From NCBI RefSeq assembly GCF_000143415.4, contig NW_003314357.1:517795-581794 (forward strand): DNA of 64,000 nt, read 5' to 3'. Shown here piece by piece: positions 56,422 through 59,411 of the stretch (positions are counted from its first letter, which is position 1; every line of letters begins with the position of its first letter). Origin of the DNA: Selaginella moellendorffii. Its lineage: Eukaryota > Plantae > Lycopodiophyta. Under the pieces are notes generated by a model, which was given only the letters and a program-made list of their open reading frames with translations, was not told the DNA's origin and ran no database searches. A program made the translations under genes and the position numbers.

Positions 56422-58678
56422 ATGATAGGCGCTGTGGTGAGGGCGTCGCGGACTCGCAATGTCACTCGTGTGCTACTCCGGAATTTATCATCGTTCCGGG
56501 AAGAAGTGGATCCCATGAATCCCAGCAAAAAGCTCCAGATTCCAGCTGACAGGTGAAAATCAATCATTCCGAGTGAATTTTGGATCCATTGCGGTCGTCC
56601 AGGTTGTGGTCAGCTCAAACTCAGCTCTCGCTCCAGAATTTCCAGATTGGCGGCGAAAGAGAGCGGATGCCACTGGCGCTGGTGCGCGCTTTTGGCATTC
56701 TCAAGATGTGCGCTGCAAAGGTTTGCTACTTTTTCTTTGTTCTTCTTTTTTGGCTTTTCAAACTGTGAGGCTTCAAAGTCTTTGTCTATCAGGTGAATGT
56801 CGCGGATGGTTTGGATCCCAAGATCGCAAACGCGATCGTTCAAGCGGCACACGAAGTCGCACAAGGCGAACACGATAATGAGTTCCCGCTCGTGGTGTGG
56901 CAAACTGGCAGTGGGACGCAGTCAAATATGAACGCCAATGAAGTAAGACATTCCTTTCGTTTCCGTTTTTGATAGAAGAAAGGAAGAACTTTGGTGTCTA
57001 GGTGATTGCAAACCGCGCAGCTGTGATCCTCGGGGAGCAACCCGGTAAAAAGTTTGTGCATCCCAACGACCACGTAAACAGAGGCCAGTCTTCAAACGAC
57101 ACTTTTCCTACTGTAAGTTTGAAGTTTGTCTTACGTTTCGCTTCAAGAAAATGAGATTTTAATCGTGCACTCAGGTCATGCACATAGCAGCTGTAAGAGA
57201 GATTCACAGCAAGCTGCTCCCGAGCCTTCGAGAGCTGTACAAGACTTTACGTGCCAAGGTATCTATTTATCATTGTTTGAAACTCTACAGTAATTTGGTT
57301 ACCTTTTCCTCAGGAGTTTGAGTTTCACGATATCGTGAAAATCGGCCGAACTCATCTACAGGACGCTGTTCCTTTGACCCTCGGCCATGAGTTTAGCGGA
57401 TATGCAACGCAACTTAAGTACGGGATCAGGCGCATCAAGGCTGCCCTCCCGCGACTGTACCAGGTAGGAGCGCGCTCGTACTTCTGATTGCTCTCTAAAT
57501 TCTTGTGGCAGCTTGCCCAAGGTGGAACTGCCGTGGGAACTGGCCTCAACACTAAGAAAGGGTACGTGCTTCTACGTCCATGCTGCCAATGACGTTGCTT
57601 GCTTTCCTCAGGTTTGACAAGAGGATTGCTAGCGCTGTTGCGGAGGTGACTGGGCTCCCCTTTGTCACCGCTCCAAACAAGTTCGAAGCTCTGGTAAGTG
57701 TTTTGCTTGTGCGTGAAAGCGTTCCGCTATATGATGTATGTTGCAGGCTACACATGATGCATGCGTGGAAGCCAGCGGTGCGCTTAACACTATCGCGGTC
57801 TCGCTTATGAAAATCGCGTGGGATATCGGCATGCTTGGAAGGTGAGAGAGAGCTTTGGTAAGAATTGTGGATTTACTTTCGGAATGTTTAGTGGGCCTCG
57901 GTGCGGATTGGGAGAGCTAAAGCTCCCGGAGAACGAACCTGGAAGCAGCATTATGCCGGTATATGTTGTTTTTTTGAAAATTTTCCCTGTTTCATAGATG
58001 TTTTCTTCAGGGAAAAGTCAATCCTACGCAGTGCGAAGCGTTGAGGATGGTTTGCGCTCAGGTATTCCCCGGTGATAACTTCGGTCTTGCGATTGTTATC
58101 GTGCCTTTTCTGTAGGTGATGGGTAACCACCACGCAATTTCCATTGGTGGGTCGAATGGCAATTTTGAGCTCAACGTGTTCAAGCCATTGATCGCGAAAT
58201 GTCTTCTTCATGTACTCTCACTGCCAACTTCTACCTTCTTTTATGCTAATGGTGTTGTTATGGCAGTCCATCCAATTGCTTGGAGATGCCGTCGATTCTT
58301 TCAACAGGAAATGTGTGATGGGGATTGAAGCCGATAGAGAAAGAATTGCGAAGCATTTGAGTGAATCGCTCATGCTCGTTACAGCCTTGAATCCGGTAAT
58401 ATCTGCTGCGCTTTCTGTGTTGTCGCTGACCATCTCTTGCAGAAAATCGGGTACGACAAAGCTGCTCTAATCGCTAAAACAGCTCACAAAGACGGAACCA
58501 GTTTGAAGGTAAGACTTTGAAAAAGAGAACTCCAGTTCCAATCTAAAGAAGTTCTCTTTCTCTTGCTCTCGCTCAGGAGGCTTGCCTGAAACTCAATGCC
58601 CTGACGGAGGCAGAGTTTGACGAGATCGTTGTCCCGGAGAAGATGGTTGCCACGGAACCTCCCATGCCGATCTCATGC
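56422..58678 (+). CDS. FUM: Class II fumarate hydratase with mitochondrial presequence; no stop codon, continues in frame into the next domain
   Basis: [64 protein letters not shown] and ...[10 protein letters not shown] across many short introns. Confidence 0.95.
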
Positions 58679-59411
58679 ACAACGCTAGTGGGAGGAGTTT
58701 ATCGCAATGGCACGGTGCTCGCTGTGGATGGCCGCGCGCTGGTCAAGTTGCCGATGAACGAGGAAGGAGAAATCGACTTGGCCGCGGTCGAAAGCATGGA
58801 TCCCGAGGAACTCGTCAAGAACCATGTCTTGTCCGAGGATTTCCAAAAGATATTCAGCCTCAAGAACACCGCATTCGCGTTCAGCGGTGCTAAACACGAG
58901 GTTTGGTTTGAGTCCTGTTTTTCCTGTTTTTTTCTTTGCTTTTGTTCTTGGCTGACGTGAGTTATTATTCTCTTCTATCCAGGCAGAGGACTTTTTCAGT
59001 GATGCCCAAGGAAAGATGCCTGACGCCGACGGTGTTGATCTGGCCGATCATGCTGCAAAGTTCTTCACCATGAAACAGGCGGACGATGTCACCTTGATCA
59101 TCGCGGGGCAGGGCAAAGTTTACGTGGTAGCGCCTCTGTCGACGCAGCTGGGACCAAAGTGCTGGACGTTTAGTCCCCACGATTGGAAGGTGGTGGGCAG
59201 TGGTAGGAGCGTCGCGAGCGAGGTATTCAAGGGTGACAAGTACGAGCAGATGGACAGGGAAAAGGTTTTCGAAGATATCTGCAAGGTGATTGATCACGCC
59301 GCTACCAAAGACAAGCTCACGGGCCCAAACATCTTTGCCTTGTTCTCGGAGAAGAGCCAGAGGGTGATGATGGGTCGGGTGGACGGCCAGGTGAAGATTA
59401 TAAGCTCATGA
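58679..59411 (+). CDS. Divergent proteasome beta-subunit/HslV-like Ntn-hydrolase domain, in frame with fumarase
   Basis: TTLVGGVYRNGTVLAVDGR (T1, D17, R19), QKIF, FAFSG, LIIAG, VVGSGR and AATKDKLTG. One phase-0 intron at 58901-58982. Confidence 0.75.

Follow-up and report, generated by a model that had tools for sequence, protein, structure and literature searches.

Proteasome-type N-terminal nucleophile (Ntn) hydrolases were surveyed by Fuchs, Alva and Lupas in 2021, and the family is defined there by a Thr1/Asp17/Lys33 triad together with Gly47 on a conserved sheet (PMC8665760). Also known are homologues without helices H1 and H2 or with insertions near the active site, among which the monomeric ligase connectase stands out (PMC8665760). 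Some eukaryotes, including the protists with a mitochondrial HslVU, have in their mitochondrial matrix HslV (ClpQ), a small Thr1 peptidase of the family; plants are stated to lack this organellar proteasome relative (PMC7050145). A precedent of another kind is grass rps14, which lies in nuclear sdh2, and whose protein reaches mitochondria by way of the targeting peptide of a tricarboxylic acid (TCA)-cycle and respiratory enzyme (PMC1543663). Described here is a gene from the lycophyte Selaginella moellendorffii, located in a 64,000-nucleotide stretch of contig NW_003314357.1 (positions 517,795–581,794; the whole of this stretch is called the window), in which the reading frame of a class II fumarase continues into a very divergent domain that, by sequence comparison, is of the proteasome-beta/HslV type.

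This fusion is a real and expressed domain architecture that is apparently undescribed. Full-text literature searches found no paper on a fumarase–proteasome-domain fusion, as the original prediction, which was made by a model from the letters of the window, had also supposed; the text of the survey PMC8665760 contains no mention of plants, fumarase or fusions. Both domain families are well known, and it is their combination that is absent from the papers searched. High confidence attaches to the gene structure, to the extension's family and to the fused messenger RNA as the form assembled in four sequencing runs, each from a different study. Much more tentatively, it is proposed that the gene encodes a plant mitochondrial hydrolase of the proteasome family with an N-terminal Thr, made at the C-terminal end of a fumarase polyprotein, in which the ~50 kDa fumarase would act as both import vehicle and giant propeptide and the two would come apart by an attack of Thr1 on a non-canonical Cys|Thr bond in its own chain.

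The gene is compact, with 16 exons on the forward strand between the ATG start codon at 56422 and the stop codon at 59409–59411. The joined exons comprise 2133 nucleotides, or 710 codons and a stop, and are free of internal stops; all 15 introns are of the GT..AG type and measure 47–82 nucleotides. The 710-residue product consists, in order, of a presequence-like N-terminus, a class II fumarase (residues 1–483), an 11-residue linker and 216 residues that begin with TTLVGG. Exon 15 starts at 58577, and from here the fumarase reading runs on in frame past the VVPEKM motif. The coordinates of the original prediction hold throughout, for this exon as well as for a phase-0 intron at 58901–58982 and the end of the frame at 59411. 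The features of the gene, with the evidence for each, are as follows.

56371–56421, + strand: 5′ untranslated region, its start taken from the longest RNA contig (2228 nucleotides, run X2), which begins at 56371.
56422–56493, + strand: presequence-like N-terminus of 24 residues (translation; a targeting role is suggested by composition alone).
56422–58645, + strand: coding region for the class II fumarase, in 15 exons, with residues 1–483 and ending in VVPEKM (Pfam, fumarases in the PDB, spliced RNA contigs).
58646–58678, + strand: 11-residue linker ending in Cys494, which would be position −1 relative to the putative processing site (translation).
58679–58735, + strand: N-terminal strand pair of the Ntn-like domain, TTLVGGVYRNGTVLAVDGR (PF00227 profile positions 5–25; beta2 and HslV alignments).
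58736–58846, + strand: acidic segment from Arg19 to the Lys33 equivalent, with ~22–24 extra residues (PHROG HslV profile; hhalign gap).
58847–58900, + strand: KIFSLKNTAFAFSGAKHE, with the Lys33 and Gly47 equivalents (weak hhalign alignment, otherwise inspection).
58901–58982, + strand: phase-0 GT..AG intron of 82 nucleotides that interrupts the Ntn-like domain (a joint skipping 82 nucleotides in four of four runs).
58983–59411, + strand: second half of the Ntn-like domain, and the stop codon (PF00227 profile positions 135–184, beta2 chain 8adn_H, Atlas neighbours).
59412–59454, + strand: 3′ untranslated region (59454 is the last position of contigs from both X2 and X3; depth drops in the 59424–59547 bin).

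The in-frame fusion that had been predicted proved to be what the assembled transcripts contain. Logan assembled contigs from the four runs, all of the same organism, were mapped to positions 56200–59900, and all 15 introns are present as contig joints with the expected GT..AG ends. The single 2228-nucleotide contig of run X2 spans 56371–59454 and with it the entire fused reading frame, and contigs of 1111 nucleotides (X3) and 1292 nucleotides (X6) also join fumarase exons to both exons of the extension. Contig depth drops beyond ~59454, ~90 nucleotides short of the next gene. The segment 58575–58898 is unbroken in all four runs, and the listed contig pieces of X1, X2, X3 and X6 carry no differing letters there, so that a sequencing error hiding a stop codon, which the original prediction had named as a possible objection, is ruled out.

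The same prediction had raised the possibility that two separate products are made, with a fumarase messenger that ends or splices after PEKM and a downstream open reading frame (ORF) served by its own promoter. A GT does follow directly after the ATG at 58646, and short-read contigs may merge overlapping transcripts and lose rare variants. However, a splice joint at this ATG|GT (58645/58646) occurs in none of the four runs, the sequence is contiguous across the site, and depth is matched between the 5′ and 3′ parts of the transcript (48/48 in X2 and 111.7/117.6 in X6). A fumarase-only message would also be devoid of a stop codon, and two separate products are considered highly improbable. As no stop precedes 59409, any fumarase that the gene yields must carry the extension when it is made.

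Run X6 also contains a second contig over 59321–59359, at about half the depth, with four differences in 39 nucleotides, of which two are synonymous and the others give K692E and Q694R. This contig points to a second expressed allele, a haplotype or a close paralogue of the extension in which the frame is kept.

Exon pieces from the fumarase part match Pfam Lyase_1 with E-values of 3.4e-10 and 1.8e-13. The last fumarase exon piece aligns with positions 30–53/54 of FumaraseC_C at 26.8 bits, a score that lies under the cutoff of 32.5 because the piece is only 34 amino acids long. Class II fumarases in the PDB have their own C-termini 1–6 residues past the VVPEKM motif, and the FumaraseC_C profile of Pfam ends one position past it. 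The ends of the solved structures and the FumaraseC_C alignment therefore place the beginning of the extension exactly at the usual end of a fumarase, and by this alignment the fumarase part is complete to its canonical C-terminus. GSSxMPxKxN is the signature motif of class II fumarases, and the 15-residue signature loop of this type is intact in the spliced translation, which agrees with the intact catalytic motif of the original prediction. The first 24 residues contain five Arg and no acidic residue and are rich in Ser and Thr; judged by composition alone, they would suit a mitochondrial presequence.

Since the domain in the extension is split by an intron, its two exon pieces were searched separately. 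PF00227 (Proteasome) was the best Pfam family for both pieces in a search of 24,736 models. Residues 13–33 of the first piece fall on profile positions 5–25 (13.6 bits, E=0.051), and residues 68–117 of the second piece fall on positions 135–184 (18.8 bits, E=0.0014); both scores, for pieces scored apart, are under the gathering score of 22.4 bits. By estimate, the choice of the same model by two separate pieces, in the right order, would lie far past chance.

In searches of the PDB, the best proteasome-chain matches for both pieces include beta2-type chains, and all of the type-labelled ones are beta2. HMMER pairs the start C|TTLVGGVYRNGTVLAVDGRAL with G|TTIVGVVYRDGVVLGADTRAT of a beta chain, and WKVVGSG...MDRE...TKDKLTGPNI of the second piece with YTALGSG...MNRE...MNDLYSGSNI of beta2 chain 8adn_H. 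Over the N-terminal strand pair, identity is 15/23 to a Leishmania-type beta2 and 12/21 to Escherichia coli HslV. The linker, EPPMPIS-C, was aligned by HMMER with the end of a beta-chain propeptide, QPPKTLKTG, without significance. Furthermore, 76 of the 100 Atlas clusters nearest to the second piece by protein language model are PF00227.

Comparisons with HslV gave a similar order of matches. E. coli HslV has weak collinear matches, and the PHROG HslV-family profile is collinear as well (E=0.21), with its positions 19–58 covering 64 residues of the extension. Local hhalign against 81 HslV sequences is collinear over 149 columns, at the weak level of P=0.05. The NCBIfam search yielded only a weak match, to an archaeal beta subunit (E=0.066), with no match to its HslV model, and PADLOC gave no match. 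A hidden Markov model (HMM) of 81 gammaproteobacterial HslV sequences reached no better than E=0.022, on a single target, and its domain scores were negative; the extension is therefore not HslV proper. This narrow HMM and the global hhalign alignment are themselves uninformative because every one of the 80 fetched loci shares 85% or more identity with E. coli HslV. On these alignments, the extension is a very divergent Ntn domain of the proteasome-beta/HslV type (PF00227 superfamily). The predicted family thus stands, in that PF00227 is the best family, the matches are collinear and the PDB and language-model results agree, with the reservations that scores are sub-threshold and that HslV in the strict sense does not fit.

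It could be argued that the resemblance to proteasome subunits arose by chance, and that the extension has a fold other than the Ntn alpha-beta-beta-alpha sandwich (S1–S11, H1–H4) of the family, or an unknown one. Each single family match is sub-threshold, the first piece has PP2C neighbours at noise level (0.71) and weak Kelch-like and villin-headpiece-like matches, and an AlphaFold2 model built from exon 16 by itself was too poor to use (pLDDT 41). Chance is nevertheless very unlikely, given that the two independent pieces meet the same family at the right profile positions, that the PDB beta2, HslV and PHROG HslV matches are all collinear, and that Atlas neighbours of the second piece are so largely PF00227.

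The other identities suggested for the first piece were rejected. A Kelch-like match to the designed six-blade protein 7onh has a whole-sequence E-value of 6.7e-5; since its single blades have i-Evalues of 28–82, no blade passes by itself, and the score is a sum over identical repeats. The PP2C identity rests at a language-model score of 0.71, which is noise. A villin-headpiece-like segment, KNHVLSEDFQKIFSLKNTAFA (58817–58879, within and just after the acidic insertion), has E ~0.3 against the PDB and lacks the second half of the headpiece; it is probably a chance resemblance, which lowers the certainty of the Lys33 assignment a little.

The catalytic positions of the family can be followed through the extension when Thr495 is numbered as Thr1.

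58679-81, + strand: Thr1, T495, within the TTLVGGVYRNGTVLAVDGR segment.
58727-29, + strand: Asp17, D511, within the same segment.
58733-35, + strand: Arg19, R513, within the same segment.
58847-49, + strand: Lys33 equivalent, K551 (hhalign pairing with HslV Lys33, weak, P=0.05, and inspection).
58886-88, + strand: Gly47 equivalent, G564 (weak alignment and inspection).
59196-59204, + strand: Gly-Ser129-Gly equivalent, G640-S641-G642, in the second domain half.
59310-12, + strand: Asp166 equivalent, D678, in the second domain half.
59319-21, + strand: Thr in place of Ser169, T681, in the second domain half.
59322-24, + strand: Gly170 equivalent, G682, in the second domain half.

Thr1, Asp17, Arg19, the GSG with Ser129, Asp166, the Thr that replaces Ser169 and Gly170 were positioned by HMMER alignments, and Thr1 and Asp17 by BLAST as well. 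In the family, Gly47 provides the oxyanion hole, and Ser129, Asp166 and Ser169 support Thr1. The exact spacing of Thr1, Asp17 and Arg19 was recovered as predicted, as was the order of the motifs QKIF, FAFSG, VVGSG and TKDKLTG. The distance from the Ser of GSG to the Asp is 37 residues, the same as from Ser129 to Asp166, and the Lys33 and Gly47 equivalents are 13 residues apart, as compared with 14 in the canonical arrangement. The putative Thr1/Asp17/Lys33 triad is accordingly represented by T495, D511 and K551, the last of these by weak alignment. Around these positions, the domain is remodelled: an acidic insertion of ~22–24 residues lies between Arg19 and Lys33 (PHROG profile; a 22-residue gap in hhalign), and the H1/H2 helix region is more than 10 residues shorter than in HslV (hhalign). 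The insertion region is unbroken in the RNA contigs and hence harbours no intron. The insertion and the shortened H1/H2 region may fit a specialised enzyme that, like connectase, possibly forms no rings better than they fit a barrel-forming general protease.

In sequence, the extension lies closest to 20S beta2 subunits and HslV, and in character to the divergent prokaryotic homologues, of which connectase is one. Compared with 20S beta2 (PF00227), the extension has the same TTxVGxVYRxGxVLxxDxRA start, the GSG and D-x-x-[ST]-G motifs and the Ser129–Asp166 spacing, and its Thr1 is preceded by further sequence in the fashion of a propeptide. In contrast to beta2, residue −1 is Cys, an entire fumarase precursor of 494 residues would stand in the place of the ‘propeptide’, the segment ahead of Lys33 is ~24 residues longer, H1/H2 is shorter, and the extension is without any match among 1.84 billion cluster representatives; the protein is also presumably mitochondrial rather than cytosolic, and without an alpha ring. 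The TT-VxVxRNG..V...DG.A start and the LIIxGxG and IGSG blocks of E. coli HslV are collinear with the extension, whereas the 81-sequence gammaproteobacterial HMM gives only the E-value of 0.022 noted above, no HslU partner is known here, and Thr1 of HslV is exposed by removal of Met and not by release from a large enzyme. The extreme divergence around an apparently retained Thr1/Asp17/Lys33 and Gly47 core is shared with connectase, PMI, PPH/RPC and other homologues in the survey (PMC8665760). Compared by description, connectase and PPH/RPC are also alike in that extra residues are inserted close to the strands of the active site and the first pair of helices is reduced. In contrast, the surveyed divergent homologues were described from prokaryotes, and propeptides are given there only for beta subunits and HslV (PMC8665760).

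Searches for relatives of the extension gave null results. The 142-residue exon 16 piece had no phmmer match at E ≤ 0.001 among the 1.84 billion cluster representatives, a set in which fusions from other species may be hidden under shorter fumarase representatives. A word-index search with the same 142 residues found no match among proteins of 78–248 amino acids, a size range in which fusion proteins could not appear. By these null searches, a stand-alone family of the extension domain is not visible. The exact products of two genomic ORFs (131 and 105 amino acids) were looked up and neither is on record, and tblastn detected no second copy of the fusion within the window.

Such isolation would suit a tolerated accident, in which either the fumarase stop codon was lost or a deletion fused the gene with a neighbouring copy of beta-subunit origin, and in which the extension is translated, without function and decaying. 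The extreme divergence and the sub-threshold family scores are in keeping with this explanation, as is the intron density, with one intron in the 690 nucleotides of the extension as against 14 in the fumarase part. Opposed to it are the signs of coding constraint. Across 228 codons, frame 0 of the extension is stop-free, against 3 and 15 stops in the other frames, and the GC content at third codon positions (GC3) is 0.69 as against 0.40 GC in the intron; the open frame is more than chance, with a coding-like GC3. Variants in the RNA contigs over the extension comprise four synonymous and three non-synonymous changes, and indels are absent. If the changes were neutral, at most three non-synonymous ones among seven would have P=0.043, and the pattern is a hint of constraint that is suggestive only. 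The precise splicing of the phase-0 intron in all four runs and the retention of the catalytic positions likewise argue against decay, and an accident of this kind is improbable.

It is proposed that a 710-residue precursor, expressed from the one gene, would be carried into mitochondria by the fumarase presequence. The Ntn domain would then cut the Cys494|Thr495 bond by intramolecular attack of Thr1, in the way that beta-subunit precursors do, to yield a fumarase of normal length alongside a hydrolase whose N-terminal Thr is exposed. The logic would be that of a piggy-back polyprotein, as where grass rps14 borrows the sdh2 targeting peptide. In that system, two mRNAs arise by alternative splicing (PMC1543663), whereas here a complete enzyme and its passenger are encoded by one mRNA, and release would necessarily be post-translational. 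Import by the presequence followed by Thr1 self-cleavage that frees both parts is given a little less than an even chance. The apparent preservation of the catalytic set in an otherwise unrecognisable sequence counts in favour of self-cleavage, and because residue −1 is Cys and the domain is heavily remodelled, cleavage at Cys494|Thr495 is plausible but unproven.

Several points weigh against the proposed polyprotein. Self-processing beta subunits usually carry Gly at −1, where Cys494 is found here, and their processing needs the assembled particle. Fumarase is tetrameric, while the rings known for proteasome-type proteins have 6- or 7-fold symmetry. The profile is best conserved at its catalytic residues, so that recognition of the domain and the finding of its residues are not independent. 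To these are added the sub-threshold PF00227 scores, the unusable exon 16 model and the null searches described above. In addition, a contig is an assembly and not a single molecule, in which rare variants are dropped, and minor isoforms are possible. Of the original interpretation, the fused transcript, the domain family and the catalytic positions are upheld, and it is qualified by the remodelling of the domain and by the Cys at −1.

The fusion could instead be stable and uncleaved, with the Thr blocked in a peptide bond and the Ntn-like domain a non-proteolytic appendage for regulation, binding or assembly, comparable to inactive proteasome subunits. The replacement of Gly by Cys, the 22–24-residue insertion with the shortened H1/H2, and a complete fumarase C-terminus joined by a linker of just 11 residues would all suit such an appendage. 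The apparent retention of Thr1, Asp17, Lys33, Gly47, Ser129 and Asp166 despite divergence past detection is hard to explain without catalytic selection, with the ascertainment bias noted, and a stable fusion is regarded as a possible but rather doubtful alternative.

If the domain is active, plant mitochondria would gain a new protease class, or a sequence-specific hydrolase or ligase, and a metabolic enzyme would serve as a propeptide. If import with self-cleavage is the true course, the protein would be the first enzyme of the proteasome type in plant mitochondria, with a new route of activation. An uncleaved protein would be a natural TCA-cycle enzyme with a proteasome-fold module, and would bear on the regulation or turnover of fumarase. 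In either case, the gene offers a clean test system, with a single predicted scissile bond for which one construct and one Thr-to-Ala mutant suffice.

The fumarase gene is arranged head-to-head with a ribosomal protein L36 gene at 56075–56287 on the − strand (Pfam Ribosomal_L36, 3.1e-21, full profile), over which RNA depth is present in X3 and X6. The two start codons are ~135 nucleotides apart, and a bidirectional promoter is therefore probably shared. On the other side, the next gene (59545–59857, + strand) begins ~90 nucleotides past the end of the fusion transcript. The X2 contig of this gene has 17 letters before 59545 that are unmatched to the window, which could reflect either an upstream exon or an indel between alleles. 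The first ORF of the gene, MAMANRLAMRKERERR..., matches mitochondrial ribosomal protein L28 weakly and below threshold (E=0.073); if this match is real, three adjacent genes would serve mitochondria. Further downstream, an ORF at 60143–60622 on the + strand, whose first exon is without a Pfam match, opens with a hydrophobic stretch and continues with PPGSHGWPLVGE, a sequence that resembles the start of a cytochrome P450.

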